Assembly (NCBI RefSeq): GCF_001194135.2
Contig: NC_069008.1
Location: 11,750,141 to 11,814,140, forward strand
Direction of reading: 5' to 3'
Origin: Octopus bimaculoides
Taxonomy: Eukaryota
Length of the DNA stretch: 64,000 bases
The notes under the pieces are model-generated. The model did not search any database, was not told the origin of the DNA, and worked only from the letters and a program-made list of their open reading frames with translations. The position numbers and the translations under genes were made by a program. Positions 15,146 through 61,040 of this stretch are shown in pieces; the first letter of the stretch is position 1, and each line of letters opens with the position of its first letter.

Positions 15146-15190
15146 CCTGTAGAATATGGTTTCTGGGTCTTTACTCTTCGTCAGTACTGG
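15146..15190 (-). ncRNA. Degenerate hammerhead motif (A/A-flanked stem II variant)
   Basis: CCAGUA-CUGACGA-A-GAGU(aaag)ACCC-A-GAAA-C(caua)U-UC-UACAGG; one mismatch in each stem. Confidence 0.4.
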
Positions 15191-17029
15191 ATGGATAAAC
15201 AAGTAATTGAATCTGGTTGAACTATATATATAATAATAATAATAAATGACAACAAAAGAATGAGACCTCAATATTAAGTAAATAGAGGAATTTATATGTA
15301 TATATAGTTTAGGACAATCTTAGCTCCAGTATTCGAAACTCCGAGTCCTATTATGACAACTTACTGATTGTCCTAAGCTATATATATACATATATAATCA
15401 TAGCTGTGCTTGTGCCTTTTAAAATAAAACACAGTCAATGACATTGACTTCGTTGTGCTCTTAGACCAGCAAGTCAGAAGAAACTTGCACCTAAACACTG
15501 CATTGTGCTGATACTGCTGACTTTCTTCCAGCATATCGATCTAATTGTGTAACTCAGTTAATATTGCTGACTGTGTTTTAGTTAAAGCTATGGTTTTAAA
15601 TATGTCTAGAGTTTCCTCTCATTGGTATTTCCCATTGTTAATGACTAAAGAGCTAGAAACACTTTGTCTGGGAATATGACAGTGGCGCAACACCTAGCAG
15701 ATATGATGTTTTTACACCTTTTCACATAAGAGAAAAATTTTTTTTCTCCACAGTAACTACAGTGAATTTGCCTTTAGAGATTAAAATACAAACATATTTT
15801 ACCTAACCTAAGTTCACTTATGCCTATTCATTACTTAGCACTGACACTGCTGAATGTGTGTGTGTGTGTCTGCATGTGTGTATGTGTGTGTTTGTCCCAC
15901 TGTTACTTGACAACCAGAGTTGGTGTGTTTACATTCTCATGACTGAGCAGTTCAGCAATAAAGACTGATAGAGCAAGTACCAGGCTAAAATAGAAAATAA
16001 GTACTGGAGTTGATTCTTCGAGGTGGTGCTCCAGCTTGGCCACAGTCTAATGACTGAAACAAGTAAAAGATAAAAGGTAGATCCATGAAAAGCCATGATT
16101 TGGGATGTCCCCCACTCACTACCCTCATGACCACAAGCATCATTGTAATTTACACATGTGCACACATACACACATTTTTTGTTTTAATAAGACACAAACT
16201 GAAATGTGTTTTTATTCAAACTTTTTCTATTTCACACAAACAAAAAAAAATGAATGAATCTAGAAACTATAGTAGAACCATATTTATGAATGTTTTTGGT
16301 GGATGGTGGTGAATATTTTCCAAATCTAATTTAAAAATAACTTTCATCATAGGAATTTCTATATCTAAATTGTTCTTCAATTGTTTAGATAAAGAAGTGA
16401 ATATTGTTTTCAAAATCCACTTTCCCTGCCAATGAAGTAAAGGTTATCACATTCAAGTACTGCATACAAATGACAAAATAAGCTGTGGATGTCACTATGA
16501 AATTGAAATTTTCTCGAATTGGTGTCAAAGCATGATTAAAATACATACTTGGCTCAGTACATAAAATGAAATGGTTCCACAACAACAAGAATGCTTATGA
16601 ATTCAAAACCATCATGGTTTTTGAAAGCTTTAAAACATTTTATTGCAAAAATTCAGTTGCAGTGATTTTAAGCAAGAGTGTCATTTTGGGGTCTGTTTGT
16701 CCGGAAAAAGAAAAAGAAAAAGCATCATATGTAGATGTCTAAAAGTGAAGAATCCTTCAACAACCACAATATTGTCGAGTGGAAGCAAGATTATTTCATT
16801 TGTAAGAAATGAAATTACCCATAATATTTAGCTGATATAATTATAAACAAGGCCCCAACATGAACGCTGTTTAATAACTGAAACAGATAAAAACAAAGAG
16901 TTAACTGGAACAGTGCCCTCCAACAGTTTTCTCTTACAGTTTGTTATATTTGCTTGTGAGGAAACTGGTGTGATGTGCCCTTCTGCTTATACACACATAT
17001 ATATGCATGTGTGTGTGTATATATATATT

Positions 17030-17245
17030 ATTCTTTTACTTGTTTCAGTCATCTGATTGTGGCCATGCTGGTGCAATGCCTTTTGTCGAACAAATCGACC
17101 CCAGAACTTATTCTTTTGTAAGCCTAGTACTTATTCTCTCAATTTCTTTTACTGAACCGCTAAGTTATGGAGACATAAACACACCAACACCGGTTGTCAA
17201 GTAATGGTGGGGGGACAAACAGATACACATACATAAACACACACA
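17030..17245 (-). mobile_element. SINE family B, 3' part
   Basis: cttgtttcagtcat..gtggccatgctgg; matches family B. Confidence 0.8.
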
Positions 17246-17247
17246 CA

Positions 17248-17635
17248 TGTCATCATCATCATCATCGTTTAACGTCCGCTTTCCATGCTAGCATGGGTTG
17301 GACGGTTTGACTGAGGACTAGCGAACCAGATGGCTGCACCAGGCTCCAATCTGATCTGGCAGAGTTTCTACAGCTGGATGCCCTTCCTAATGCCAACCAC
17401 TCTGAGAGTGTAGTGAGTGCTTTTACGTGCCACCGGCACAAGGGCCAGTCTGGCGGTACTGGCAATAGCTACACTCAAATGGTGTTTTTACATGCCACCT
17501 GCACAGGAGTCAGTCCAGCAGCACTCGCAACAACCTCGCTCGAATGTTTTGTTCACAGGCCACTGGCACAAGTGCCAGGAAGGCGACACTGGTAACAATC
17601 ACACTCAAACGGTGCTTTTTATGTGCTACTGACAG
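17248..17635 (-). mobile_element. RTE-LINE 3' tail
   Basis: (CAT)n followed by the reverse complement of the common tail. Confidence 0.8.
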
Positions 17636-18226
17636 CAAAAATTTAGATTCAGATGAGTAAGGTACTTAAGTTGCACTGGAATTTAGTACAGTATTATCCA
17701 TACAGTTTCAAAATAAGGTGATAAAAATCAAAATAAGCAACAGCATATCCAGAGGTAATGCAGTACAATCATTTCAAGTGACTCCATTTAACTGAACAAT
17801 GTAATCATTACATCAATTTAAATGCAGAGCAATCCTCAGTTGCATAAATACATAGAATTAAATTAAATTAAAACAGATTGACACATTAGTATAATTTTAC
17901 CTAAAACCTCCAAGAAGGTAAGGAGATAGACAACGAACATGCTGTCTTCACTTCCACTTAGGAGCTACTAAGGTATCAGGAAGGAAGACTTGTTAAAGAT
18001 GTAGCTTGTCACTGTTTTTGGGGGTCAGTTTTAATTTATAGTCTTGTTTATCAAATCTTTGTATATCAAAAATCTAAGGCCAAGGAACAAGGAGCAGTGT
18101 CTGTTCGACGGGCTGGGTCGAAGCAAACTGGTTTAATAGATTGTGTTTCTGAACGCATCAAATTATATTAGGAAGGCGGCGAGCTGGCAGGAACATTAAC
18201 ACACCGGTCAAACTGCTTAGTGGTAT

Positions 18227-19899
18227 AACGGCTCTGTGAAGTCATTGCGTGAGTCTATGTTGAACTGTTTATTGAATTGTTGCCATTCTTGATTGAATTG
18301 TTGTTGATTCGTTAATTGTTTTGTTTCCCATTGTGGGAAAATGGAGAAGCCGGAGGCAGACCCAAGTTATGTGGCTGCAACGGGCAAAGGAGTAGATACG
18401 CGAGAGTTGGAGGTTCGCAAGATAAAGTGGAGCCTAGAAAGATGAAGGAGAGTGAGAAATTAATCACAAAGGAAGGAAACACTTTGAAGCTAACACCGCC
18501 TGAAGAGCTATCGGCCAACGTGACAAAAAGAACGGTTATATTTAAAACCATGAGAAAGATAGAAATTGCACCAATAGATGCCATAGAGGAACGTGTTAAG
18601 AATATAAAAAGATTCACAACATACATTACGAGAGGGAGAAGATACGCCACTGTGGAGGTGCGCTTCTCAATGGAGGAGGAAGCAATAAAGCACTCCACAG
18701 AGGCAATAAGGACAGACAAATGGGTGCTGTTGCCTTCGTACTGCGGCAAACATGTGGCCAAGGTGCAAGTGGGTAAGGTACCACCCGAATTGAAAGAAGA
18801 ATGGCTGATGACAGCCATAACGTATAATATGAAAGACGGGAAAATTCTGAAGGCTACAAGGACCCAGAAGGTAGATTACTGGGGATATAGTATCGAATTA
18901 ATGATTCAGGCAACAACGGAGGACTTGAATAGTGTGGTGGAGGAAATTGTGCTCCCAGAAGATGTGAAACTGAGAGTTACTGTGGAGGGGAGGCCGCCAG
19001 TGTGTTTCACATGTGGAGAAAGGGGCCACATGAAGGCATGGTGCACCCAAAGAAAGCAACAAACAGAACAGGTGGAGAGACAGGAGAGGGTGGACCAGGT
19101 AGTACAGGGCAAGGCAACAGAAAAAGAAACAGAGAAGGGAATCACCATGGTTAAAAGGAAAGGAGGGAGGAGCTGAGGAATGAGTTCTCCGCCAGAGAAG
19201 CAGAAAAAGAAGAGGGACGAGGTGAGAAAGGGAGCTGTGAAGGAGGGCAGTAGGAAGGAAAAAGAATGTAAAAAGAAAGTGGAGTTACCAGTGGAGAAAG
19301 TGTCGGAAACCCAACTGTATGAAGGTGAGATGAAGAGACTATTTATGGAGGAAGAAAAGAGAGAACTAAAAGTCCAAGAGAAAGGAAAGAAGATACGAGG
19401 AGGAGAAGGAGTATGGTATTATGTAATGTACCCAGAAAATGTGGAAACAGAGAAAATAATCAAGTTACATTCAATAGTAAGGGTAAAGGTGCCTTCATAC
19501 ATCTACGCGGAGGATATGAAGGCAATATTGATTGAAGAGGAAAACTATAGAAAATTGAAAGAGATGTGTGGAGATAACATTGACCCGCCAGGAGTGAAGG
19601 TGGAATTTAAAGAGTTGCCACCAGTGGTGGAGTTAAGAGATATCGAACCACTAATGAACTAAAGACAAAAAAGGTATGAAATTAAAGGGGGAAAAAAAAA
19701 GAACAATTGTAAATAGTACATATAACGGTTCAAATGGTACTGCATGGGAGTGGGGCCCATGCGTCCATTTTTATTTTTTCATTTTTATATAACTTTCATT
19801 TCATTTACATTCGTTTTATGTTTTTTGTCCCCACTGTGGTCTTGTCTGTCCTTGTGGTGTCCCCGTCTGTGTTTGGGGCTTTATGCCTAATAAAGAAAT
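18227..19899 (+). mobile_element. ORF1-only (half-LINE / HAL1-like) non-autonomous retroposon
   Basis: Flanked by tggtat/cggtat (18221-18226, 19900-19905); contains a gag-like ORF with a CCHC knuckle, no ORF2, and a T-rich 3'UTR ending taataaagaaat. Confidence 0.75.
18341..19662 (+). pseudogene. L1/Tx1-type ORF1 (gag-like, zinc knuckle CFTCGERGHMKAWC); one inferred frameshift and one in-frame TGA
   Basis: ATG at 18341 gives MEKPEADPSYVAATG (stop 18445) and shifts into the 286-aa frame; ORFs 18316-19176 and 19180-19662 are in frame, separated by TGA-GGA. Lys/Glu-rich middle. Confidence 0.75.
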
Positions 19900-20087
19900 C
19901 GGTATTTCGTCTGTTGCTACGTACAGAGTTCAAATTCCACTGAGGTCGACTTTAATCCTTTCAAAGGTCGATAAATTAAGTACCAGTAAAACACTGAGGT
20001 CGATCTAATCGACTAGTCCCCCAAATTTCAAGGCCTCGTGCCTTCAGTAGAATGGATTAAATTATATTAGGAACTTTTAGTTCTTCA

Positions 20088-20380
20088 CACCGGAGTCATT
20101 CAAGCGCGGGAAAATACCAGCAACACCGTTTATTTAGTATGTGAACAATTAGTTCGGTCAATTTAATTGTGTTATGTGTAGTAATTACTCCCACGTTATG
20201 TTTGTAGATAGGATAGGGTGATCTACATATTTCAGGGTCGATGTTCCATCCCCTTTCATGACTGAATATTTCGTTTCATCACAAACCATATCGTTTATTG
20301 CTTGTTCCCTAAAATGGGTTTTAATCATTAACAAATGAGAGGACAACTTTCTTAACACTGTTTTATTTCCCAGCTGACCG
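20088..20380 (+). promoter_or_regulatory. Putative promoter/first exon of ZNF-B
   Basis: caccggagtcattca... aligns with the reverse complement of 14050-14362; E2F-type gcgggaaa at 20106-20113. Confidence 0.5.
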
Positions 20381-20614
20381 TCAAATCAAAAAAAAAAAAA
20401 AAAAGAATATGTTTATATTTGGATTTACCATAACAACATATTGTGTACTTTTCTACTATCCATGGTAAACAACTCTGATTTATCAATTCTTCTTCCCGAC
20501 TCAGCAATCACACCATCAAATAAGCGGCTACGTCTAAACATATTCATATTTCTTTCCCTGAGATCTATTTTACGTCGTCTTAGCGTAGAAATTATAAAGT
20601 GTTTTCGTCTGTAA

Positions 20615-20934
20615 CAGAAGTTCTCTACCATTTCTTTTATCTATGGACCACTTTGATTACTATTTTATTCTGGTAGACCCCCCATAATCATTTAATGTTT
20701 AAAAACTAGTTTTATAGAAACTTCTTTAGAAATTATTTTGTTTTACATACATTAACTTGTGTGCGTTGAACTATGTAAAATGTTAAAGAAAAAAAAAACC
20801 TAGCTGTTTCTTACAATACATCTAAAGCAAAATTTTTTCAGTGGCCTTTAAAATACTGAGGTGGACCCCAATTTAATATTCTATTACGGAGAGCCCTAAA
20901 AAATCTTATATAGACCCCCGGTTGATAATCACTG
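20615..20934. mobile_element. hAT-like MITE (CAGTGGTTCTC-type ends, degenerate)
   Basis: Ends cagaagttctctacc / ggttgataatcactg; the interior matches a second copy at 36160-36480. Confidence 0.6.
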
Positions 20935-21078
20935 TGTCTGTGATAAGTAAACTATATCTTCATTGCATAATTTCTGCACATGTAGCAGATTCCCATGATG
21001 TCCAAGTCAAGAAAACTAACCACAAGAGAATATTCTTAGACATTTCTCAGATTTTGATTAAGTACCTGAAGATTGGAT

Positions 21079-22653
21079 ATGGAAGACGTTAATCACTTGG
21101 ACACTTCTGTTTTTAACCCTTTAGATTCAGTAACATGGACATACAATGATATGAAACCGTTATGTAGTGAAACGTTTATTCAACAACGATCGTTGGAAAG
21201 AAACATTCCTGACTACCGCTGTGATATTTGTTGGAAAAGCTTCTCTTCAGGAGATGAAGTTTTGACACATCAAGAAATACACAATAGGGAAAAATTCTAT
21301 CACTGTAAAGTATGTGGAAAATGTTTTGTTTCCGATGGCGATTTGACAAAACATACAAGAAGACATACCGGAGAAAAACCCTATCACTGTGAGTTATGTG
21401 AGAAAACATTCTTTGAGAATTCTAGTCTCGTACGTCACCGAAGAATACACACGGGAGAAAAACTGTTTCACTGTGAAACGTGTGGGAAATTTTTTGTCTG
21501 TAACAGTAATTTGACCGCACACAAAAGAACCCACACTGGAGAGAAACCCTACCATTGTGAAATATGTGGAAAATCTTTCCTTGAGAATTCCGGTCTCCTA
21601 CGTCACCGAAGAATACACACTGGAGAAAAACTATTTCACTGTGAAGTCTGTGGGAAACCTTTTGTCTCTAACAGTAATTTAACAACACATAAAAGAACAC
21701 ATACTGGAGAAAAACCTTATGGGTGTGGAATTTGTGAGAAATCTTTCTCTGATAAATCTACTCTTGTAGTTCACCAACGAATACACTCTGGAGAAAAACT
21801 ATTTCACTGTGAAGTTTGTGGCAAATCTTTTGCCACTAACAGTAATTTTATAGCACATAAAAGAATACATACAGGAGAAAGACCATATGAATGTACAATA
21901 TGTGATAAATCCTTCTCTGATAATTCTAGTTTCATACATCACCGAAGAATCCACACTGGAGAGAAACCATATAATTGCGATATATGTGGGAAATCCTTTT
22001 CTGATAATTCTAATCTTGTAGTTCATCGAAGAATACATACTGGAGAAAAACGATTTCATTGTGGTCTGTGTGGGAAGTCTTTTGTCACTAATTGTGATTT
22101 AAACAAACATAAAAGAATCCACACTGGAGAAAAGCCTTTTCATTGTGACATATGTGGTAAATCATTCTCTGATAATTCTAGTCTCTCAGTTCACCGAAGA
22201 ACGCATACTGGAGAAAAACGATTCCATTGTGAAATATGTAGCAAATCGTTTATCACTAATGGTCACTTAAAGTCGCACAAAAGAATCCACACTGGAGAGA
22301 AACCTTTTCACTGTGACATCTGCGGGAAATCATTTCGTCAGAACTCTTACCTCATAGTACACCAAAGAATACATACAGGAGAAAAACCATTCCACTGTGA
22401 AATATGTGGTAAATCTTTTGTGTCTAACAGTGATTTAACAAAACATATAAGAATCCACACTGGAGAGAAACCGTATCATTGTGAAACATGTGGAAAATCT
22501 TTTGTGTCGAACAGTGATTTAAGATCACATAAAAGGACACACACCGGAGAGAAACCTTATCACTGTGAAATGTGTGGAAAATCATTCTCTGATAAATCTA
22601 CACTTGTAGTTCACCAAAGAATCCACACTGAAAATAAAACCCTACCATTATGA
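21079..22653 (+). CDS. C2H2 zinc-finger protein B (524 aa from ATG; 17 fingers)
   Basis: Intact ORF; first ATG at 21079 (the track start 21073 is TTG); N-terminus [10 protein letters not shown]. Confidence 0.93.
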
Positions 22654-22688
22654 AATAATATGGGATATCATTTGTCTATAAAAGTAGC

Positions 22689-23220
22689 TTAACCCTAGAG
22701 CATTCACATTATTCTGTCAAAAGTGTGTATTGTATTGGCACACTGTCAGTTACAACGACAAGGGTTCCAGTTGATCTGATTAATGGAACAGCCTGCTCAT
22801 GAAATTAACATGCAAGTGGCTGAGCGCTCCACAGACACACACATCCTTAACATAGTTCTCAGGAAGATTCGGCATGATACAGAATGTGACATGGTTGACC
22901 CTTTGAGATACAAGTACAATTCATTTTTGCTATCTGAGTGGACTGGAGCAATAGGGATTAAAGCATCTTGCTCAAGGACACAATGCACCACCAATAATCG
23001 AACTCACGACCGTACGGTCATCAGCCAAATGCCCATAATCACTAAGCCACGTGCCTTCACTATAATATTTATTTATCCACATTGTTTTCAATTAATCATA
23101 CATTATCTTGTAGTTTTGAGATTTTGATGAGGTAACTAAAAATTTTAGAATGATATTGTAGGGTTGGTGTGAGAGGCCACATCTGGCCAGTTTGAATATA
23201 AAACAGATAGAATATTTGGG
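22689..23220. mobile_element. piggyBac-type MITE remnant (TTAA-CCC start) with nested SINE fragments
   Basis: ttaaccctagagcattc... matches MITEs at 28085-28305 and 56676-56890; SINE-D-like piece at 22735-22905. Confidence 0.55.
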
Positions 23221-23589
23221 ACACAGACAAATATACAAAGGAGAGAAATCTTTTAACTGAAACATAAAACCTTCTCTTATAAATCTAAACTTATGTAAAA
23301 AAAAAAAAAATAAAGACCCCTTTGGTCACTATTGACTGTGGGATTGCACCTAGAAAGTTTCCCTCTGAGGCACAAGTCCAGGCAAGGTTTATGGAAGACC
23401 AGCAGTTGCCCATGCATACCAGCCTTTCCTCTCCGTATTACAAATTTTGTTCAAGAGAAAGGCAAACTCTGATACAGCTTGACACAGGTGACATCACAAC
23501 TCATTTCTACAGCTGAGTGAACTGGAGTAACATGAAATAAAGTGTTCTGCTAAAGAACACAACACACAATTGTAATCTACTGACTGGAG

Positions 23590-23690
23590 GGGGACATACC
23601 ACTGTGAAACATGTGGGATATCATTCTCTGAGCTCTGATCTTGTAATCCAGAAATACATCCTAGTGAAAGACCTGTTATTTGTCTTTCAA
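23590..23690 (+). pseudogene. Decayed finger remnant downstream of ZNF-B
   Basis: taccactgtgaaacatgtgggatatcattctct reads YHCETCGISFS, then degenerates. Confidence 0.5.
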
Positions 23691-23913
23691 GTTCATTACA
23701 AAGACAAGATCTCATTGATTATGATTAGAAAAATGCAAAAATAAAAGGCTGTAGAAAATATGTGAAATTTGTGGAAAATTATTCTTTTATGTGTCATGTT
23801 ATATATAAGTGAATACATGCAGACGAAAATACTGAGGTGATAAATTGAAAACTTAACTAGAAGTAGATAGATGAGCAAGTTTTAAGACTCAACACACTCA
23901 ATGGAGAATGTTT

Positions 23914-24115
23914 AATGAGGGAATGCTGAAAAGTTCCTGGCTGTGAGTAAAAGAAAATACCAGAGGATCAGTTAATTTTATTCAACATATTCCTCTCTCA
24001 GATTCACACACTTATTGCAGTGGGCCTCTAGTTTCTCTAAACCCTGTAAAATAACTTGGAAGGTTAGGCTTTCATGATATCCTTAAAGACAGGAACTTTT
24101 CAGGACACCCTCATA
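23914..24115. mobile_element. Mariner-type MITE, copy 1 (about 200 bp)
   Basis: TIRs atgagggaatgctgaaaagttcctg / caggaacttttcaggacaccctcata. Confidence 0.75.
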
Positions 24116-24517
24116 TAAATATATATCGTCATCACCATCATCGTTTAATGGCTATCTTCCACGCATGCATGGGTAGAATGATTGACAGGAGCTGGCCAGG
24201 TAGAAGAACTACCCTAGGCTACTGCATCTGTTTTGGCAGGGATTTTACAGCTGGATTCCCTTCCTAACACCAACCACTCCACAGAGTGAACTCAATGCTT
24301 TTTACATGGCACTTGCACAGGCGAGGTTAGTTTTGGCATGACTTTTACAGCTGGATGCCCTTCCAAATGCCAACCACGTTACAATGTGGACTGGATGCTT
24401 TTAACATGACACCGTCACTGGCAGGGTAACCAAGTAACTCACAAGATAAGGAATTATGAGGGGCAGGGCATTTGAGGTGGGACAAAGAAACAGAAGCAGG
24501 TGTCTTGCCACCACATA

Positions 24518-24719
24518 TATGAGGGGTGCTGGAAAGTTCCTGGCCTTAGGTTTAAAAAAAATGCAGGAGGATCAATTGATTATGATTCTATCCAACATAT
24601 GCCCTTCTCGGATTCACACACTGCAGCAGCCCATCAGTTTTTCTAAGCCCTGTAAAAGAACTCCAACCAGGCCATTCACAATACCCTTAAAGCCAGGAAC
24701 TTTTCAGCATTCCCTCATA
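24518..24719. mobile_element. Mariner-type MITE, copy 2
   Basis: TA-flanked TIRs tatgaggggtgctggaaagttcctggc / gccaggaacttttcagcattccctcata; interior homologous to copy 1. Confidence 0.75.
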
Positions 24720-24723
24720 TTAC

Positions 24724-25314
24724 ATTACAATATTGGGATCTTTTTTAAAACGGGGGCCACATTTTTCATTAACGAAACACTTTGAAACTTGGAACACTGG
24801 TAGAATGTGTCATATAAAACATCTTTTTCTCTTAGTCTTCTTAAAAAAAAAAGAAATCCCTAAGTTATTCCATGTTAAAGTTGTTGTATTTCTGTAATTT
24901 CAACCAATCACTGACGTCCATTCAGCCGATATACATTAAGTGCCGACTACATAAACAAACGATTCTGAAACAATTAACCCTAACCCTAACCCTAAGGTTA
25001 GGGTTAGGGTTAAAGCAAATTTAAAATGAAAAAAGCAAATAAAACGAAGGTATGGAGATTAAATACGCTTTACATCGCTTAATCAGCAAAGGAGTAAATG
25101 TAAACAACTGAATACTTGTCAGTGATTGGTTGAAATTATCGAAATAAGACAATTTTTTACATGAAATAAATTCGAATACAAAAATATTTTTCTGTTCTAT
25201 AACACAAAATAGATAAGTATACAAAGTTTGAAAGTCTTTTGGTACCAAAAACACTACGTAAAACATTAATGAAAAATGTGGCCCCCGTTTTAAAAAAGAT
25301 CCCAATATTGTAAT
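24724..25314. mobile_element. Foldback MITE with 49-bp perfect TIRs and a central telomeric-repeat palindrome
   Basis: TIR 24724-24772 = rc 25266-25314; inner IR 24896-24915 = rc 25118-25137; ttaaccctaaccctaacc-ctaa-ggttagggttagggttaa at 24974-25013. Confidence 0.85.
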
Positions 25315-27479
25315 TAATGTATAAACGTACTCAGTCATCATCTGCAGTCTGTATCTGTCTCATGGTCTGTGTAATCAAAGATAGTTTTATGGTGTGTCAC
25401 TTGGATGGCATTGGTGAACTACAATACTGAATTAGAACAAATGCCTGAAGTTTTAACTATTGTGAACTTATTTCATTATTGTAAAGATGACAGGTTACTT
25501 GGAATTGAACTAAGGAACATAAATAGAACATCTCTCATCATTTAATAGCTGTTTTCCATGCTGGCATCAATTAGCTTGGCAGGAACTAGCAAGGCCAGGG
25601 ACAACACCAGGTTCCATAGTCTGTTTTGGCATGGCTTTTACTGCTGGATGCCCTTCCTAATGCCAACCACTTTACAGAGTGTACTGGGTGCTTTTTATGT
25701 GGAACCAGCTCCAACACCAATGGCACTTTGGTTTTAGGATATCCTTTACATGGTACTTCGGTTTTAGAATAGAGCATTCTCACTAAAATCAGTGTTTAAA
25801 TTAACAGTACAGAAATAAAGATATTTCTTCTGTATTCTTCAAACTTTGAAGTTTGCCAATATTCTAAAGCACAAGGTTGTAAGACTGATGCACAAAAGGC
25901 CAAATCAAACAGTAAAAATCAAAACTAGAAAGTCTGTCTGCTATAGTGTCAAAATACCAGCAAGATGACCATGTAGTAACAGTGATATAATTGTAGAAAA
26001 CCATCAAACCAATCTCTCTGCAAGCATTCATCCAAGTGGAACCACTTCATTTCTCCTCAGCGGCCAATTATGATTTTTATTGGAATTCATTGCATAATTG
26101 GTATTTTTTATTATCTGCATGAAATTTAAAAGAATAATTACAAAAATTAAAGAGTTTATGTATATTAGATTGTATTATTTTTTATTGTTTACTTGTTTCA
26201 GTTGCTGGGCAATGGCCATGCTGGGGCACCATCTTGAAAGGTTTTGTCAAACAAATTGACACCAGTACTTTTTTTTTTTAGTCTGGTATTATCCTATCAG
26301 TCTCTTTTGCTGAACTACTAAATTACAGGGATGTAAGCCAACACTAGTCTTGTAAGTTAGTAACCCTGCTGGTGCCACATAAAAAGCATCCAGTCCACAC
26401 TGAAGTGGCTGGCATTTAGAAGGGCATCCAGCTGTAAACCCATGCCAAAACTGACCTCGCCTCTGCTGGTGTCATGTAAAAAGCACTCAGTCCACTGTGG
26501 GGTGGTTGGTGTTAGAAGGGCATCCAGCCATAAAAACCATACCAAATCAGACAATAGCCTGGGGGTAGTCTTCTACATGGTCAGCTCCTGTCAAACTCTC
26601 CAACCCATACCAGCATCGAAGGCAGTCATTAAATGATGATGTTGATGGGGAAAATAATGTTGTTTTTTTTTTACTCCCTCTCCCCCATCTTCTCCTCTCT
26701 GGACCGATTTTGGTAGATTTTGGGCGGGATGGGGGCAATATGCACTTAGAAACTATAAGAAAAGCCTTTTCAGTAAAAAAAAAAGTATTTTCAGATGAAA
26801 AGGTGTGTGATTTAAGGGAGATATGTTTTCGTTTCAAGCATATTCCATGAATAAGTTTTTGCTATTGATGAGGAGGAATATTGAAAAACATCAATACTTG
26901 TTAGAGTGACAAAGAAACGAGGAAAGTGGTAATGGGATATGCTAAAAACAACAGCCAAATTTCCCTTTAATCACACACCTTTGCATCCGAAATTTTCTTT
27001 TTTCATCAAAGAGGCTTCTATTATAGCTTTTAAATGCGTAGTGCCCACAAAATCGATCAAAATTGGTCTGGAGATGGGGAGAGATTAATAGAAACCATTT
27101 AAAAAAAGTTGGTCCGGAACATTTCCAAGGGCACCGGGAAAACAAAAAAGAATCTGAATAATCCCCTGTCAAAACGGAGAAATTCCAACTTGTCGGTGCT
27201 ACCCTATCTCCGACGTCCGCTGGCCGGTGTTTCATTTGTTCTTCGAATACATTTATTACCAGATTCTGAACATTCTTCTTAGAACCGTAACATATGCAAA
27301 GGTACCAATTTGTATTATATCTTCCAGCATTGTATTAAATCTATTAGATATAGCGTATATAAAACATTTACTAAATACCACTACATTTAACAGCGTTTTT
27401 TTCATATCATCATATTTTATTTATTTATTATTATTATCATTTGTGGGGAGGGGAATAATTCACATATGTTCCTGAAACA

Positions 27480-27860
27480 GCGTATATGCAAAGAAACTAA
27501 ATACATTTCGCCGTTTGTGTTTCCAAGTTAGTTTTTTAAGTTGCTGGTTGACACAAAGGCTTATGAGATTGTCTCTTGGTATTTGAAAGACATTTGGTTA
27601 ATTCAAGATATTTCCACACCGAACACTGGTATACACACACACACACACACATCTACATAAGGTAAGATATATTATTTAGTAAAAGTTGGTGAACATAAGT
27701 TACTAAAAAATGTTTGTTTATGATGAGATCGATATTAAATCCTGCACTGATTGCGAGAAATTGATAATTAAACAGATCTAATCAATAAGGTAATAAATCA
27801 ACGGCATATTTATTCATCACCATTCTCTTAACTACGATCTATAATTGTAAATCTACACTT
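27480..27860 (+). promoter_or_regulatory. Degenerate copy P1 of the tandem-array promoter/first-intron module (upstream of ZNF-C)
   Basis: Shares atattatttagta.aa.ttggtg...gagatcgatattaa...cactgattg with 40470-40630, 52260-52340 and 63200-63330; donor aag|gtaaga near 27660. Confidence 0.5.
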
Positions 27861-27884
27861 CCTTTCAATGAGTATGTAATCCTG

Positions 27885-28082
27885 TCTACTATAGACATGT
27901 ACAAGGAGAGGGGGCTTGTCGATTATGTCAACTCCAGTGCTTGGCTGGTACTTAGTTAAATCAATCCCGAAATGATGAAAGGCAGAGCCAGCCCCAGCGG
28001 AATTTGAATTGAGAAAGTAAAGTCGGATGAAATGTCGCTATGCATTTTGTCCAGTGAGTTAACGACTCTTCCAGCTCGCCGC
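27885..28082 (-). mobile_element. SINE family A
   Basis: Reverse complement of the family A head/body. Confidence 0.75.
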
Positions 28083-29379
28083 TTTAACCCTTTATTAGCA
28101 TTCAGAGTCTTTTGTCAAATGTTAATGCTTATTTATTCACATTTTTTTTTATCAATCATGCTTTATCTCGTTGCTTCACGATGTTGATATGATTGTTTGT
28201 TTCAAGAATGACATTGTAGCATATGTGTGAGAGGCTGGATCTGGTCAGTTTTAATGTAAAACAGGGATAATATTTTGGCCAGATATGGCCGGTTTAGATG
28301 CTAAAGTGTTCATGAACTTGTAATAGTAGGATGATAAACCCTTTCAAGTGTTCCACCCTGAAAATTTATTGGCGGGGATCTTGAATAGCACGCCCAGGGT
28401 GGCCCTTCAGTTTGTCATCCCCGATCTCCTACAAAGAATACATATTGCCTACAGCAGACCCAAAAATGATTCCGCCTGTGGGGGAACCCCTCCCACTTCT
28501 AGCTATGTTACTGGTAAGTTGTAGCATGCTGGTTAATTCATAGACCATGGAATAAATAATACAGTTAACATAACTTTTATTTACCTTTACAAGAAAAACA
28601 AGTTGTTTGACTCTGATAAATATCTGAATGTGAACATTTGAGAAGAAAGGAAAAATGCTTGCAGAAACATTCAGACTAAGGATTCAGTGCCTTTTGAATC
28701 CTGGATGTAGTCACTTCATGTGTGTGTTTGTATGTATGTGTGTGCACGCATCTGTGCGTGTATGTGTTAAGGTGTCCTGAATACCATTTATTCTAATGGT
28801 CATTTTAATATCTGCGTATGTAATTTTATTTTAGTTATGTTTTCCTTAAATCTTTCTCTGTGTGACTTTTTGAACTAACTATAATACATTCGTGGTGGAC
28901 ATAGGCAAAGTCAAAGAGCTGTGTGGGACAAGGGAAACAGAATTTTGGGTGACGTCTGATCTGTGTTAATTAATTACCAAATAGACTAATAACATTTTAA
29001 TACACATACATGTAGCAATACTAATATCCACCACCATCATCCTTTAACATTTGTTTTTCATGCTGGCATGGATTGGATGGCTTGATAGGAGCTGGTCAGC
29101 TGGAGAGTTTTCCAGGGTCCAATTATCTGTTTTGGCATGGTTTCCTATGGCTGCAGCCCTTCTTAATGCCAGCCACTTTACAGAGCATATTGGGTGCTTT
29201 CTTATGTATGTGCTCCAACATGAAGGCATTTATGTGGCACCAGCACAAGTGCATCTTATGGCACTGGCATGAGTGCATTTTACATGACACTGGCACCTGT
29301 GTGACAAAGACCTCTCAGCTTGGAGAGGGAGTGTGGATATGGCCATAAAGGTCATACTTATAATATGTGTGGATAGCTT

Positions 29380-29610
29380 CGATTTTACTTACCTTGATGT
29401 GTCTTCTCAAGCAGAGCAAATTGCCACAAGTCTGGGTCCTTTGTCATCTCATCAGTGAGGCTCAGCATCGAAAGATCCTTTCTCACCACTTCATCCCATG
29501 GGTCTACCCCTTCCACGGGTTCCTTCCATAAATAGAGATCATCACTTCTCTATGGAGCTGCCCTCATCACATGACCATACCAGCACACAATATTTATTAA
29601 TGAATGACAG
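29380..29610 (-). mobile_element. RTE-LINE coding 3' end remnant
   Basis: Reverse complement reads CWYGHVMR..EGTRGRGRP..WDEVVRKDL. Confidence 0.7.
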
Positions 29611-30020
29611 GAAAACAGGAATCATGTAATTGACTTCATTAGCTTTCAGGTGTTTCTGCTATATGAAGATAAATGTATGTTGGCTTTCGTAGGATTTTCG
29701 AGCGAGATCATTGCCAGTGCCCCTGGACTGGCTCCTGTGCGGGTGGCACATAAAATACACCATTTTGAGCATGGCCGTTGCCAGTACCGCCTGACTGGCC
29801 TTCGTGCGGATGACACATAAAAGCACCCACTACACTCTCGGAGTGGTTAGCGTTAGGAAGGGCATCCAGCTGTAGAAACTCTGCCAAATCAGATTGGAGG
29901 CTGGTGTAGCCATCCGGTTTCACCAGTCCTCAGTCAAATCGTCCAACCCATGCCAGCATGGAATGCGGACGTTAAACAATAATGATGATGATGATATATA
30001 TATGTATATATATATATATA

Positions 30021-30071
<51 letters not shown>

Positions 30072-30220
30072 ATTATTATTATTCCATTTAGGCAGAGTGA
30101 CACTACTAACTGGGTGTTAGAATTCAGTGTGTATATGCTTCAGAATGAAGCCTCTGTCAAGTACAGAGCAGATAAATGGGAAACTAAAATGACAAACAAG
30201 TAAGAAATATGAATTCCATT

Positions 30221-30301
30221 AGCTTATAGCCATTTCTGCTATAAGATGCAATGCTCTCATAGTTGAATGCTTGTACATCACTCTATAGCTTCATCAGAGC
30301 T
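30221..30301 (-). ncRNA. Type I hammerhead ribozyme motif with long stem II (A/A variant)
   Basis: AGCU-CUGAUGA-A-GCUAUA(hairpin insert)UAUAGC-A-GAAA-UGGCUA-U-A-AGCU; stem I 4 bp perfect, stem II base 6 bp perfect, predicted AUA cleavage triplet. Confidence 0.6.
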
Positions 30302-30531
30302 TTGAACTTAAAGTGCAATAATTTCTTATTCCTTTGTCATTCTAATTTCTTATTACTGCTATGTATATGTATACATGCATACATACATACATACATACAT
30401 ATATATATATTTATATTTTATTTCTTTCAGTTATTAGACTGTGGCCATGTTGGAGCATCACACTGGAGAATTTTAGTCAAACAAGTCACCCCCAATACTT
30501 ATTTTTTTTAAAGCCTGGTACTTATTCTGTT

Positions 30532-30794
30532 GTGGAGGCACGTGGCTTAGTGGTTAGGGTCTCAGCATCATGATCGTAAAATTGTGGTTTCGATTCCTGG
30601 ACTGGGCAACGCGTTGTGTTCTTGAGCAAAACACTTCATTTCACATTGCTCCAGTCCACTCAGCTGGCAAAAATGAGTAACGCTGCGATGGACTGGCGTC
30701 CCGTCCAGCTGGGGAACACATACGCCATTGAAACCGGGAAACCAGGCCCATGAGCCTGGCTAGGCTTTAAAAGGGCGCATTTATTTTTTTATTT
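30532..30794 (+). mobile_element. tRNA-derived SINE nested in a family B SINE, 13-bp TSD
   Basis: tacttattctgtt is duplicated at 30519-30531 and 30795-30807; A-box tggcttagtgg, B-box gtttcgattcc. Confidence 0.85.
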
Positions 30795-30904
30795 TACTTA
30801 TTCTGTTAGTCTCTTCTGCCAAGCTAGGAAGTTACAGGAATGTAAATACACCTACACCAGTTATCAAGCAGATACACACACACATATATATACCATTATT
30901 GTCA

Positions 30905-31530: not shown

Positions 31531-31646
31531 AGCCTCATTCTTCTTTAACTTTTGCATCTCCTCTGCATTTAGGGCTCACATATATATGCACTTATATATA
31601 TCATCATCATCATCATCATCGTTATCATCATTTAATGATGATGGTG

Positions 31647-31678
<32 letters not shown>

Positions 31679-48245: not shown

Positions 48246-49225
<980 letters not shown>

Positions 49226-53058: not shown

Positions 53059-55703
53059 TAAGTTTTAAACATTTGGAATTAGATTATGCTTTACAGAACT
53101 ACTTTTTGAATTTTTTTTATTTGTTTGCTCCCATTCCATCTCTATTCTGTAAGTTTTCATTTTCTATAACTTTTGTTCTTCATAGTTTTTCGAAATTCTT
53201 TTCAGAGGTACATTTCTTTTAATTTTTCATGTTACATTTAGGAAAAATAAATTTTTCACAAATTTAGACATACCTACACAAGTGTGATTGCCCCGCCCCC
53301 AACCTTGTTACATCATAACTGCCAGAAAAATGGATATTTTTCAATGAAATTTTCTTCAAATATACTTCAGATAGTGTAGATAACGGTCATATCAGAATTT
53401 CATGCAAAAAATAAAATTGATGGGCAATTGTGATGTACGCACATCACAATTTTTTTTAGAAACAGAAAGTTTCATTCTGTAGATAGATATATCTGATGTA
53501 TGTCAATATGTATGTGTGCGAGCCTACTATTTTTTAATCTTAGATTCCAATATAACACTAATGTATACCATCTGAAAGTTATTTGTAGAAAATTTTGTTA
53601 ACAAAAACAATATTCATTTTCCTGTTTAGATAAGGCCTAATTTAATTATTTGGAGTCCCGTTTCGATTTTTATTTTTTTGTTAAAAGTGTTGTTAGTGGC
53701 AGAATCCAACATTATATTAAATTAATGGATAACAATTGATATTGATAGTTGACTAGGAACATCAAAACATGTTTAATTAATAGTGTTAACCAAATCTGCA
53801 ATTTACTTTCATCATCATTTAATGTCTGATTTCTGCTATGCTGGCATAGTTTGGACAGGGCTCTAGTCGTCTGTTTTGACATTGTTTCTATGGCTAGATC
53901 CCCTTCTTTATGCCAACCACTTTGGAGAGTGTATTGGGTGCTTCTATGTGGCACCAGCACCCATGAGCCCACAAGATTAGGAACGTTCAGCTGAAGAGGG
54001 AAGCAGGGGACATGCACATATACAAGGACAACCTCGATTTTACTTAGTTTGATGTGTCTTTTCAAGCACAGCAAAGTGTCAGGAGTCTCAATCCTCTGTC
54101 ATCCCCTCTGTCATTGAAGCCTTTCTTTACTAATAGAGGTAGTAGCTCTCATTTAGCAGTTAAACTGGGGTTTTCAAAATAACAGATCCATATTTCAGTT
54201 TGGAAGTATTATGCTATACACAAAAGCTTGAATGTAGTGTTGTTGGTGGTGGTGGTGGTGGATGTAATGATGGTGTTAGTAGGTGTGGTGGTGATGGTAG
54301 TAAATGGCGAAGGTGCGTGCATCGTATTACTATTACTCATTTCCAATGTAGTCATATCTTCACTTTCAGATAACCATTGTATCCTCAAAGAAGTCACATA
54401 ATTATACTATTTACACACTACACTGGGACGGACATGTCCTCTCCTGCTAGATCATCCTATCAGGGTTTTACTCTCATTTGATGCAGCAGCTGCAAGCTGG
54501 GAGAGACCGCATGGCAGGACATGACTGGGGAAGATCTCCAGAGGCTCAACATCACGTTGGAGAATGCAGAGGGGCTGGTATGGAACTGTCAGTGATGGAA
54601 AGCACTAGCGGACCTGGTCAGATTTTTACAGCTGGATGCCCTTCCAAATGTCAACCACTCCAGTGTGGACTGGATGCTTTTAACGTGATATCAGCACTGG
54701 CAGGGTGACCAAGTAACTTGCAAGACAATTTAAGAATATTGTATTTTCTGTGTAAATTATATAAATGTTTGAAAAATTTTTGAGCAGGATTAAAATATTT
54801 AAAGAATTTGGAGAAATATGCTATTCCTGGGAGACCATTACCATGGTGGCAGTGTGGATCCAATTATTCCTTCTAATGAAGTGCTTATATCTAAGCAAAA
54901 TCAGTAACTGTATGACACTATCTTTTCTATATATTGCGACCTGAAATAGACTACTGCCATGTCTGGCAGATGAGTGCCCATCACTGAGGATGGTCCAATA
55001 ATATCAAATTCACTTGGTCTGGTGGGCTTGGAGTTAGGATGTTAGTGAGTTCTCTCCCTGCTTGCAATATATATCAAGTACGAGGTGCACTGAATAACCA
55101 GCTGGAGGAGGAGTCCTGGGGTTAAAATAACAGTATCATCTGTTCTTAAAGAACACCTGTGCTTAAGTGACAATAAACATTGTTTATATCTGTTACTTTT
55201 TCCTAAATAAAAATGTAGTAAAATTTCCACTCTTGTATCTGTACATTGTAAGTATTCTCAGGATCTTATATTTTTGTTTCTTTTATATTTCAGAATACCA
55301 GAAACAGCAAAGAATTATTCACAGTGAATACAGCATCTATATTTATCATATTTTCAAGACTAAACAAAAATATTACACAGAGCAGATTTATTTCCATTTA
55401 TATAAATGAAAGGTGAACTACAGATGAATATTTTATATAGAACTGTTATTAATAGCTGCATTTGAGTTTTTCTCTGCTTTGAATGTTTATGCATTGATTT
55501 TTACCATCTAATTCCACTTTTCCATTGTATAAAACATATACAAGATCATTTCAGTTAGTAAACTTGGAAGAACTTTCAAAGGGGTTTGCAGCTTCTCCAG
55601 ATATCGACAAATATAACACTTGGTGGAAATATAGTAGTAGTAGTATTTGCTAAGAATAAAGCAAGACAAATCAAGCGTATATGGGGATAATAAAAGAAAA
55701 ATT

Positions 55704-56630
55704 ATGGAAGTTGAGTTATGCGAGAAGAAAGTTAAATGTGTGACAAACTCTAAAATCATTGATGTTGTTGATGATCTAAAGCCATATCACTGTGGTATCT
55801 GTGGTAAATCATGTTCTGATGAAGGTTGTTTCATTAAACACAAGCGTATTCATACAAGAGAAAGACCATATCAGTGTAATATATGTGGTGAATCATTTTC
55901 AAATAGACTTCATTTAACTCCTCACCAATATATTCATACGGGAGAGAAACCATATCACTGTAATATCTGTGGTATGTCATTCTCTCGAAATGGTAACTTA
56001 ACAACTCACAAACGCTTTCATACAGTAGCAAAACCATATCAGTGTGATATCTGTGGTAGATCGTTCACTCAGGCACAATCTGTAACTGCTCACAAACGCA
56101 TTCATACAGGAGAGAAGCCATATCACTGTGATATCTGTAGAAAGCCATTCTCTCAAAGTAGTACCTTAAGTCAGCACAAACGTATTCATACAGGAGAAAA
56201 GCCATATTGCTGTGATATCTGTGGTAAGTCATTCTCTCAAAATTGTGATTTAATTAGACACAAACGTACTCATACTGGAGAAAAGCCATTTCATTGTGAT
56301 ATCTGTGGTATGTCATTTTCTGATGGTAGCCATTTAAGTAAACACAAGAAAATCCATACAGGCGAAAAACCATACCAATGTACCATCTGTGGTAAATCAT
56401 TCTCTCGTGTAGATGCTCTAACAATTCACAAACGGGTTCATACAGGGGAGAACCCTTATCCTTGTGATGTTTGTAGTAAGTCTTTCTCTAACCGCAGTAA
56501 CTTAAATAAACATGTGTACATTCATATTGGAGAGAAGACATATCTCTGTGATCACTGTGGGGAGTCATTCTCTCAAAGTTGTGATTTAAGGAGGCACAAA
56601 TGTGCCCATACAGGAGACACCCATATGTAA
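55704..56630 (+). CDS. C2H2 zinc-finger protein F (308 aa from ATG; 10 fingers)
   Basis: ATG at 55704 ([20 protein letters not shown]) is homologous to the starts of C and D; acceptor AG at 55292-55293. Confidence 0.92.
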
Positions 56631-57638: not shown

Positions 57639-57902
57639 CCCTTTTGAGACATACAGTATTTTTTATGTGTAGCCAAAAACTGAAATTTTTTTCTGTTGAG
57701 ATTGAAATTGATGGGTGTATATAGAAAACAAAGGCTAAAGTGCCTATAACTACTTTATTAATATGTAAAACTATATATATATTATATAGTTTTAGATTAA
57801 ATCTACTGAAGGATGATCTCTAGCTATTACATTTTAAAACCTCAAAGTCCTTTCAGTTTGTATCACCCGTGCCGATCATTTGGCCTGGGTGTCACAAGAG
57901 GG
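57639..57902. mobile_element. piggyBac-type MITE nested in a SINE
   Basis: TTAA TSD at 57635-38 and 57903-06 splits gagaaccacattaa|gggtaagcatg of a SINE. Confidence 0.8.
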
Positions 57903-58129: not shown

Positions 58130-58245
58130 CATACATGAGAGAAGCCATGTAACATCCATGGTAAAATGTTCACACATGGATGTGCCTTAACTTGTCACAG
58201 ACACATTCATACAGAAGAGAAACCATATCACTGATATTTTTAGCA
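58130..58245 (+). pseudogene. Decayed finger remnant
   Basis: cacattcatacagaagagaaaccatatcactg ([10 protein letters not shown]). Confidence 0.6.
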
Positions 58246-59494
58246 ACTTTTTGTATCTTGTTTGCAAGATTCTTTATGTGAACTTGTGTGTTGAAGCAAA
58301 TTATGTTGTGTCTGGGGAAAGTCATATTGTCTTAATGCTTTATTATCTAACACACTCACTGGTTCATTTTCCATTCATTATTTATATTTTTTCTTCCAAA
58401 ATTTTCATTGCTTTTGCAACCTTGTCAATGGATGTTGACTCTCTCCAATATAAATAATTGTTGTTGCTGTTGGCACTCCGTCGCTTACGACGACGAGGGT
58501 TCCAGTTGATCCGATCAATGGAACAGCCTGCTCGTGAAATTAATGAGTAAGTGGCTGAGCACTCCATAGACACGTGTACCCTTAACGTAGTTCTTGGGGA
58601 TATTCAGTGTGACAAGGCTGACCCTTTGAATTACAGGCACAACAGAAACAGGAAGTAAGAGTGAGAGAAAGTTGTGGTGAAAGAGTACAGCAGGGTTCNN
58701 NNNNNNNNNNNNNNNNNNNNNNNNNNNNNNNNNNNNNNNNNNNNNNNNNNNNNNNNNNNNNNNNNNNNNNNNNNNNNNNNNNNNNNNNNNNNNNNNNNNN
58801 NNNNNNNNNNNNNNNNNNNNNNNNNNNNNNNNNNNNNNNNNNNNNNNNNNNNNNNNNNNNNNNNNNNNNNNNNNNNNNNNNNNNNNNNNNNNNNNNNNNN
58901 NNNNNNNNNNNNNNNNNNNNNNNNNNNNNNNNNNNNNNNNNNNNNNNNNNNNNNNNNNNNNNNNNNNNNNNNNNNNNNNNNNNNNNNNNNNNNNNNNNNN
59001 NNNNNNNNNNNNNNNNNNNNNNNNNNNNNNNNNNNNNNNNNNNNNNNNNNNNNNNNNNNNNNNNNNNNNNNNNNNNNNNNNNNNNNNNNNNNNNNNNNNN
59101 NNNNNNNNNNNNNNNNNNNNNNNNNNNNNNNNNNNNNNNNNNNNNNNNNNNNNNNNNNNNNNNNNCATGCTCGCATGGGTTGGACGATTTGACTGAGGAC
59201 TGGTGGACCAGGAGGCGACATCAGGCTCCAATCTGATTTGGAGAGTTTCTACAGCTGGATGCCCTTCCTAATGCCAACCACTCTGAGAGTGTAGTGGGTG
59301 CTTTTACGTGCCACTGGCACGAGGGCCAGTCAGGCAGGTACTGGCAACGGCCACGCTCGAAATGGTGTATTTTACGTGCCACCTGCACAGGGCCAGTCCA
59401 GGGGCACTGGCAACGATCTCGCTTGGATGTCTTACTGGCAAAGGCCACGCTCGAAGTGGTGTATTATGTGTCACCTGTACAGGAGCCAGTCCAT

Positions 59495-59660
59495 CGGCAC
59501 TGTAACATTTGTGGTAAAACACTCTCTCATGGATATGCCTTTATCATGTCACAAACACATTCATACAGGAGAGAAACCATATCACTGACATGAGTAGTAA
59601 ATTATTTCCTGGAAAAAGTGCCTTAACTGAACTATATTATGATATAGGGTCGTTATACTG
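59495..59660 (+). pseudogene. Decayed terminal finger followed by the ZNF 3'UTR block (to about 60300)
   Basis: [27 protein letters not shown]; the downstream block 60070-60300 is homologous to the D 3'UTR; AATAAA at 60130. Confidence 0.65.
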
Positions 59661-60984
59661 TACAACATATATGTATGTATGTACTTACATACATTTCTGT
59701 GTATGAGAGAGAGAGAGAGGGAGACAGGGAGAAAGAAAGACTAGACTCGACATACCCTGTTAGGCTGTCTTTTGTTTTACTACTATGTGCAAAATCATCT
59801 TTTAAGATCTGTTATACCCTAAAGTCATTATATATCAAATCTTATTATACATCACAGTCCATTATGTTTCAAATCTTATATATCAATCTCGTTATGTCTT
59901 CAGTCTTACTATATATATATCAAAGACCATTATATATTAAGCCTCATTTTTTATTTGATGTCTGATTAGGTAACAAGGTTGCTTGTATCAAGTTTTATTT
60001 TTCCTGAGTTTTTTTAAGATATAAATTTGACCTGATTTCTAACAGTATTATGTATTGCTGTTGTTGTTGTTGTATGACCCTATATTTTTAAAACTTTTTT
60101 TGACCCTGTCAATTTTCAATATTTTGTTCAATAAATTCTTTCCTTTAATTCATTGGTATTTCTGCATTCCTGATCTTTCATTGGGTAGTCTAGAAATTTT
60201 TTTTAAATGTCCATTAAGTGCACCCTATAGAAGAAAGAATCAATATTTATGTTGATGTTGATACGCTGAGAGGGAGAGATTCAACACCTTTTTCTTTCTG
60301 TTCTTGCTTTACAACCACGTGGTTTGGGGTTCAGCCCTACTGTGTGGCACCATCTGCAAATGTCTTCTATAACCTTGGACAGACTAATGCTTTGTGAGAA
60401 AATTTGATAGCTGGAAACTGTGTGGAAGCCTGTTGTGTGTATATAGATATATGTATGTGTCTTTGTGCTTGTATTTGTCTCCTGCCAGCCCTACCATTTG
60501 CTGATTGGTGTTAGTTTGTTTATGTTTCTCTAACTTTGTGGTTTGGGGATAGGGACCAGTAGAATATGTACCAGACTTAATATGTATATATGTAATTTGG
60601 TTGATTTTCTTTGTAACCTTCACAGCTGTGCCTAAGCACGGCTGCACTGCAGTCACCAAAATGTAAACAATGGCTGTAGTCTAATGACTGTAGAATGGCT
60701 GTAGTCTAATGACTGAATCAAGTAAAAGATATATATATATATATATATATTTTATATAAATAAGGATAAGATCGGTATTTAAAATATTGATCTTATCAAG
60801 TGGTCAGCATGGGAATAAAAACCATCAAAGGTAATAATTATTTAAAATTATAATACAGGGTATCAAGAGATACCACCACGCTGAAAAAATAGCAGTCAAA
60901 TCCTGACTCCAAAACCACAATAAATGTCCGCAAGGCACGATTAGCGAAGACGAAGACCAAATAAACCAGTAAAATAATAAGATA

Positions 60985-61040
60985 ATTTCAAATCCTGGAT
61001 TTCTGGCTTTGCATAAATGCTCTGCCTTCATCAGTGAAAT
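60985..61040 (-). ncRNA. Type I hammerhead ribozyme motif (A/A variant, palindromic stem III)
   Basis: AUUUCA-CUGAUGA-A-GGC(aga GCAU uu AUGC aaa)GCC-A-GAAA-UCC-A-GGA-U-U-UGAAAU; stem I 6 bp perfect; lies in a ~480-bp segment bounded by (TA)n. Confidence 0.68.

Follow-up and report, generated by a model that had tools for sequence, protein, structure and literature searches.

Type I hammerhead motifs with an A•A layer at the base of helix II in a stretch of the Octopus bimaculoides genome

A stretch of 64,000 nucleotides of Octopus bimaculoides DNA (hereafter the window) contains three short minus-strand motifs, M1 (15146..15190), M2 (30221..30301) and M3 (60985..61040), that carry the conserved bases of the hammerhead ribozyme together with an additional A on each side of helix II. 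Do these motifs form a ribozyme class of their own, a variant of a hammerhead type already described, a set of decayed remnants, or a coincidence of sequence? An earlier inspection of the letters (the sequence-only reading) had proposed that the symmetric A/A arrangement may define a variant class spread by several retroelements. We find that M1–M3 are real hammerheads that depart in one layer from a known kind, and that they are likely to be solitary monomers of short, AT-rich, non-autonomous retroelements of O. bimaculoides, of the retrozyme or Penelope pseudo-long-terminal-repeat (pLTR) kind, each with a type I hammerhead.

Anatomy of the three motifs and their excess over chance

All three motifs follow the same order. 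The 5′ strand of helix I leads into CUGAYGA and an A, after which come a hairpin with G as its first base and C as its last, a second A and GAAA; this is followed by 6-7 nt closed by a U (the A15.1-U16.1 pair), a non-G base at H17 and the 3′ strand of helix I. The invariant core (C3 U4 G5 A6 N7 G8 A9/G12 A13 A14/A15.1-U16.1/H17) is perfect in three of three, with an NUH site, and the topology is type I, helix I being open and helices II and III closed. Missing in every copy is the Watson-Crick 10.1-11.1 pair that stacks on A9•G12: an A on each side intervenes before a G-C pair. The sequence-only reading had described three minus-strand motifs with the hammerhead core, base-paired stems I and II, an NUH triplet and an unpaired A flanking stem II on both sides; in this it was right to the base. 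A C/D-box small nucleolar RNA identity of the CUGAUGA sequence was ruled out, with no D box at the 3′ end.

M3 is the best formed of the three. Its helix I pairs AUUUCA (61040-61035) with UGAAAU (60990-60985) over 6 bp and continues outward through a symmetric 3x3 internal loop into 4 bp. The core CUGAUGA lies at 61028..61034, and the two As of the layer, at 61027 and 61004, enclose helix II (61026-61005), in which the A•A and 3 bp (GGC/GCC) are followed distally by an A-rich internal loop (AGA/AAA) and a hairpin. Downstream of GAAA (61003-61000), the helix III segment AUCCAGGAU (A-UCCAGGA-U, 60992..61000) is self-complementary at 8/9 positions, with an A in its centre, and the H17 base, a U at 60991, is the predicted cleavage site. 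Minimum-free-energy (MFE) and co-fold predictions did not discriminate, except that helices I and II of M3 are present in the MFE structure.

M2 has a shorter helix I and a much longer helix II. AGCU at 30301-30298 pairs with AGCU at 30224-30221 (4 bp), and helix I is extended by a further 5 bp beyond an internal loop. The core CUGAUGA (30291..30297) and the 5′ A (30290) precede an imperfect 52-nt hairpin at 30289-30238, closed by GCUAUA/UAUAGC; the 3′ A (30237) and GAAA (30236-30233) follow it. Helix III, AUGGCUAU (A-UGGCUA-U, 30226..30233), is self-complementary at 8/8 positions, including two G.U pairs, and H17, the predicted cleavage site, is the A at 30225.

M1 is the weakest copy. Helix I (15190-15185 CCAGUA with 15151-15146 UACAGG) forms five of six pairs, with one A.A mismatch, and helix II (15176-15165, GAGU-AAAG-ACCC) contains one A.C mismatch. 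The core CUGACGA (C3-A9) occupies 15178..15184, the layer is made by the As at 15177 and 15164, and GAAA (G12-A15.1) lies at 15163-15160. Helix III (A-CCAUAU-U, ACCAUAUU) is not palindromic, self-pairing at just 4/8 positions, and by hammerhead numbering cleavage is predicted 3′ of H17, the C at 15152. M1 is a degraded copy and probably inactive by now. Of the stems III that the sequence-only reading had called very short, those of M2 and M3 are short and palindromic.

Counts in the window were compared with those expected from randomized sequence. A pattern free of structural terms, CTGAYGAAG-N(6-66)-CAGAAA, has exactly three matches, which are M1–M3, against about 0.02 expected from dinucleotide-preserving shuffles. 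A structural descriptor likewise gives three matches. It asks for the core, the A/A, three of the first four helix II pairs, A15.1-U16.1, H17 and, in helix I, four or more contiguous pairs or 5/6. In 300 block dinucleotide shuffles it averages 0.007 matches; with 2000 scrambled-core decoys of this descriptor on the real sequence the mean was 0.0075 and the maximum 1. The descriptor thresholds were relaxed post hoc so that M1 and M2 pass, the stricter version catching M3 only. As negative controls, 22 kb from an unrelated eukaryotic contig gave no match, and the bare core pattern had a single match in 52 kb from Aplysia, at chance level and without helices.

Relation to known hammerheads and to other octopus copies

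A close published analogue is HHR_Amex2 of the axolotl, the type I hammerhead of a ~350-bp non-LTR (long terminal repeat) retrozyme that is one of two axolotl families and is present in about 60,000 copies (Cervera and de la Peña 2020, PMC7229834). Its cloned sequence reads CUGAUGA-U-GCC-CACUA-GGC-U-GAAA-CACGUG-UA (supplement, PMC7229834), and it self-cleaves, the monomer weakly but the dimer well (PMC7229834). Like M1–M3, HHR_Amex2 has type I topology and a helix II that starts with a symmetric non-Watson-Crick layer and continues with G-C, and it shares with the octopus sequences a palindromic helix III (8 nt, ACACGUGU; compare M2 and M3), a four-layer helix II and an AT-rich unit of about 300 bp. 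The layer itself is U•U in HHR_Amex2 but A•A in M1–M3. The octopus helices II carry long insertions, unlike that of HHR_Amex2, and HHR_Amex2 is found in tandem arrays with proven circular RNAs, whereas M1–M3 are solitary.

The two As are best read as occupying 10.1/11.1 in the form of an A•A mismatch, with the usual G-C next to it. They count as a mismatch rather than as insertions because, in both M3 and HHR_Amex2, it takes the mismatch together with three pairs to make up the four layers of a canonical helix II.

Penelope-like elements provide a further point of reference. In their minimal hammerheads helix I spans 4-5 bp and helix II is long; conserved features are an unpaired base separating A9 from 10.1 and the pair G10.1-C11.1, and the helix III region is palindromic, which implies dimers. 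These hammerheads are mostly solitary, vary extremely in sequence inside one genome and also occur as opposite-strand pairs 100-700 bp apart (Cervera and de la Peña 2014, PMC4209133). M1–M3 share with them the unpaired base past A9 (an A, then G…C, in all three), the G-C, the short helix I (4-6 bp), the long helix II, the palindromic helix III region (in M2 and M3), the extreme variability of sequence in a single genome and the solitary copies. The Penelope hammerheads, however, lack the extra base 3′ of helix II that M1–M3 have, and their helix III is 0-1 bp, compared with 8-9 nt in M2 and M3. They also sit in the pLTRs of elements encoding reverse transcriptase (RT) and endonuclease, but no such element is present in the window, where M1–M3 have neither an open reading frame (ORF) for RT and GIY-YIG nor a repeat partner.

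The non-LTR retrozymes of metazoans are AT-rich, about 170-400 bp long, and yield circular RNAs; the hammerheads they bear are of type I and undergo cleavage as dimers (PMC7229834). Those of mussel (Mg353) and coral (Amil224) resemble the octopus motifs in type I topology, in a helix I of 6 bp and in units of about 200-390 bp (PMC7229834), and their 8-10 nt palindromic helix III (ACGCGCGU in mussel) is like that of M2 and M3, which both show the palindromic, dimer-forming helix III characteristic of this group (8/8 and 8/9). They differ from the octopus motifs in that G10.1-C11.1 abuts the core, helix II is a compact 4 bp and the units are tandem repeats; the head-to-tail arrangement of AT-rich units of about 170-400 bp is not seen for M1–M3. 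The (+) hammerhead of the viroid CChMVd has, like M1–M3, an extra A10 directly past A9, but without a matching base before G12, and it is of type III and in a viroid (De la Peña and Flores 2001, cited in PMC4209133).

These comparisons bear on two claims of the sequence-only reading. An extra base past A9, which had been noted from a viroid hammerhead, is a conserved trait of Penelope-element minimal hammerheads, and the proposal of a variant ribozyme class is overstated, since the active HHR_Amex2 has the same symmetric layout with U•U. The interpretation in the sequence-only reading is thus supported in part. We conclude that M1–M3 are genuine hammerheads of a kind already described, of which they form a minor variant, and that the literature holds a close analogue. 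In the literature we found no published A•A at 10.1/11.1, the large Lünse 2017 variant set lying outside this comparison; that set, by Lünse, Weinberg and Breaker, reportedly comprises about 150,000 variants with a reduced helix III. A giant squid paper counted 235 hammerheads.

A second octopus locus was searched with the descriptor unchanged (L002, 21 kb of another O. bimaculoides chromosome, CM046615.1, of which 14 kb was read). It contains two minus-strand, canonical-core type I hammerheads with long helix II inserts, La (5554-5483) and Lb (8313-8216). La reads CUGACGA-GUAG…CUAC-GAAA-UCAUGA-UC and Lb CUGAGGA-GUAC…GUAC-GAAA-CGUACG-UA, each with a perfect core and without extra bases, and their helix III segments, AUCAUGAU and ACGUACGU, are perfect 8-nt palindromes. 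Both have four helix II layers ahead of an interior loop or insert. La is built much like M3, with a helix I of 6 bp, a 3x3 internal loop and a closing stem, and a helix II of four layers, a purine-rich internal loop and a distal hairpin. On this evidence type I, dimer-type hammerheads are dense in the octopus genome, with the A•A motifs as a subset.

The window also contains hammerhead cores of a different kind, in a ~95-bp inverted repeat whose arms, at 8277-8371 (-) and 8541-8616 (+), each start with one. The arms read CTGATGA-A-GGCTGGAGGrTATATCAGCC-GAAAC; here the extra A is confined to the 5′ side, and a G-C pair comes next; helix III of the plus copy has shrunk to ACGU, and there is no convincing helix I. 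They lie 5′ to 5′ about a tRNA-like SINE (short interspersed element) head (8375-8450) and (AAT)n(AAC)n, and the right arm continues into a repeat with a further copy at 57665-57840. The arrangement resembles the published opposite-strand pairs of Penelope-type minimal hammerheads.

Carrier units and competing explanations

What carries these hammerheads? Comparison of the flanks of M1, M2 and M3 revealed no detectable similarity, in keeping with the unrelated contexts noted from the letters; the single high flank score, between M2 and Lb, reflects a shared microsatellite and not homology. Each motif lies in a putative unit bordered by simple sequence. The M1 unit (236 bp, 38% GC) has an (ATT)n(TA)n microsatellite (15222..15245) just 5′ of the motif in the RNA sense and a minus-strand A15 run (14986..15000) about 150 nt 3′ of it. 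Possibly this run is a poly(A) tail left by retroposition of the ~236-bp unit; no target-site duplication was identified. The M2 unit (288 bp, 33% GC) and the M3 unit (283 bp, 34% GC) have TA-rich microsatellites on both sides in the RNA sense: for M2, (ATAC/TA)n at 30360..30410 on the 5′ side and (TA)n(TG)n at 29994..30071 on the 3′ side, and for M3, a degenerate TA/TG-rich tract at 61046..61129, only 6 nt 5′ of the motif, and (AT)n at 60729..60762 on the 3′ side. With microsatellites strictly defined, P for their proximity is about 0.09 (M1), 0.13 (M2) and 0.22 (M3), and the microsatellite association is only suggestive. Spread by several non-autonomous retroelements associated with microsatellites, as the sequence-only reading had it, is plausible.

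The sizes and composition of the units (236-288 bp, 33-38% GC) match those of published retrozyme monomers, about 300 bp with <45% GC. Penelope-type endonucleases are reported to prefer (TA)n targets, and dispersed monomer derivatives of retrozymes have been described in frogs. Unit size and GC content, the (TA)n preference and the dispersed frog monomers all fit a retrozyme-sized monomer as the putative carrier. In such an element, two motifs would pair through the palindromic helix III, either in adjacent repeats or between two RNAs, giving a stable helix of 8-9 bp, and each core would then cleave 3′ of H17 (C 15152, A 30225, U 60991). The resulting unit-length RNA, with 5′-OH and 2′,3′-cyclic phosphate ends, would be ligated to a circle, and the circle would be reverse-transcribed by a Penelope-type or LINE (long interspersed element) enzyme of an autonomous element and inserted preferentially at TA-rich microsatellites. 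Within the core, the A•A layer would stack between the G-C pair and the sheared A9•G12 (and G8•A13) pairs; it may weaken helix II and lower the activity of monomers without abolishing dimer cleavage, by analogy with the axolotl U•U. Because they are single copies, M1–M3 are probably dead-end, non-mobile insertions.

Several observations weigh against an origin from such elements. Each of M1–M3 is single-copy in the window, where none of the units recurs, and a stretch of 600 nt around each motif contains neither a direct repeat nor another hammerhead; six-frame motif inspection found no Penelope RT/GIY-YIG reading frame in the window. The units would be putative monomer derivatives, of a kind already described. 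The sample is small, at three A•A examples in about 77 kb of octopus sequence, and one of these is M1, with its mismatched helices I and II and its non-palindromic helix III. In mutagenesis of minimal hammerheads, a non-Watson-Crick 10.1/11.1 lowers activity. Finally, the Rfam models Hammerhead_1, Hammerhead_3, Hammerhead_II, HH9 and HH10 gave no match in the window, whether the gathering score or E<=10 was applied, and the hammerhead models gave none even on a 101-nt slice around M3. The same models also miss the canonical-core La and Lb and, in a slice at 8260-8640, the 8368/8544 pair of the inverted repeat. Since canonical-core octopus copies are missed too, the Rfam negative is uninformative on the identity of M1–M3; the models do not cover an architecture of long helix II and short helix III.

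The single-copy state of the motifs could also mean that they are catalytically dead relics, in which the A•A was inherited from one founder rather than selected and marks no functional variant. Such relics would lack a dimer partner, as M1–M3 do; M1 is visibly degraded, a mismatch at 10.1/11.1 is generally expected to lower activity, and three examples are compatible with common descent. Yet the flanks and all three helices are wholly different among the copies while the 11 core bases, the A•A and the next G-C are kept, the helix III palindromes of M2 and M3 are intact, and the equivalent U•U variant is active and abundant in the axolotl, so that we regard dead relics as unlikely. We judge it improbable that the symmetric A/A marks a distinct hammerhead class, not described before, that several retroelement families without relation to each other have spread: although the A/A turns up three times within 64 kb, each time in a different, unrelated context, the window lacks any canonical copy, and the literature we found does not mention A•A at 10.1/11.1, the symmetric layout is already published with U•U, a 5′ extra base is standard for Penelope-element hammerheads, and canonical-core copies of otherwise identical architecture coexist in the octopus genome.

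Two further readings are very hard to sustain. If M1–M3 were chance look-alikes in AT-rich, hairpin-rich DNA, the post hoc tuning of the descriptor, whose stricter form fails M1 and M2, would be easily understood, as would the absence of any Rfam score for the three. But three motifs are observed where three null models predict 0.007-0.02, and the palindromic helix III (M2, M3), the G-C past the mismatch and the extended helix I were not used in the search; even with a generous factor for the post hoc thresholds, a chance origin is untenable and in practice excluded. It is no less far-fetched that the motifs are cis-acting ribozymes regulating neighbouring zinc-finger genes. M1 does lie 1.26 kb upstream of a zinc-finger ORF on the same strand (12855-13886, -), a point of position only, but M2 and M3 are off the strand of their nearest genes and the motifs resemble the dispersed, repeat-borne type.

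We place limited weight on a broader idea: that A•A hammerheads are an abundant, active, cephalopod-specific subclass missed by standard Rfam annotation, in which the purine-purine layer would restrict cleavage to dimers or to the presence of a cofactor, and that the motifs would mark octopus retrozyme families, not recognised so far, that produce circular RNAs; at present this is doubtful, though conceivable. Confirmation genome-wide, together with activity, would place A•A alongside U•U as the second symmetric non-Watson-Crick arrangement known from nature at a site where G-C has long been regarded as obligatory, and hammerhead descriptors and models would be refined. Cephalopod genomes would then hold far more hammerheads than Rfam-based annotation reports (the two small octopus samples, 77 kb in all, suggest a density in the region of one per 15 kb, which is a very rough estimate), and retrozyme-type circular RNAs would be indicated in cephalopods. 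The understanding of hammerhead catalysis or of retrozyme biology would not change. The main practical value is that current models miss cephalopod hammerheads and that a descriptor should permit a symmetric mismatch at 10.1/11.1.

Genomic setting and other features of the window

A protein of the window maps exactly to a site near 11.79 Mb in chromosome record CM046628.1 of O. bimaculoides GCA_001194135.2. The contig that holds both M1 and M2 is ungapped (14711-32690), and M3 lies on another (59166-61776). No assembly gap touches a motif, the nearest N being 436 nt from M1, 2390 nt from M2 and 737 nt from M3; that M3 shares the strand of M1 and M2 depends on scaffolding, and nothing else needs continuity across a gap.

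The window holds a cluster of single-exon C2H2 zinc-finger genes and many SINEs, LINE and mariner remnants and microsatellites. Besides the minus-strand ORF upstream of which M1 lies, single-exon C2H2 zinc-finger ORFs are found on the plus strand at 21073-22653, 33436-34791, 41827-42909, 48246-48909 and 55647-56630. An N-terminus of the form MExExxExxVKCxTxSKIIDxxD is common to three ORFs of the cluster, and a cluster with N-termini of this type is typical for the octopus zinc-finger expansion. At 18316-19662 (+) two ORFs occur in succession, and a CCHC zinc knuckle makes the first of them gag-like; four homologues were found, three of them from O. bimaculoides.

Remnants of mobile elements include two of mariner-type transposases, at 9628-9957 (-) and 32307-32675 (+), and two of LINEs: a 3′ coding remnant at about 31250-31330 (-) and an RT fragment at 61300-61788 (+), which the gap at 61777-61786 interrupts. 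A search for tRNAs found none. Sub-threshold Rfam microRNA matches (mir-297, mir-1277, mir-3149 and mir-466) at 5998-6063, 9452-9561, 30360-30408, 31578-31706, 37823-37887, 38578-38734 and 61046-61129 all fall on TA/TG microsatellites, and a microRNA reading of them was rejected as resting on low-complexity artefacts.

An interspersed repeat of ~320 bp is present at 17223-17541, 38375-38576 and 59166-59423 (+) and at 29700-30021 (-), with further, more diverged copies near 11417, 25604, 46038 and 46522. It contains …TGGACGATTTGACTGAGGACTGGTG…CTACAGCTGGATGCCCTTCCTAA… and has (ATC)n/(TA)n microsatellites at its borders; CTGAGGA occurs in it, yet without a hammerhead. An interstitial telomere-type repeat at 24967-25012 forms a perfect palindrome of (TAACCC)3 followed by (GGTTAG)3.

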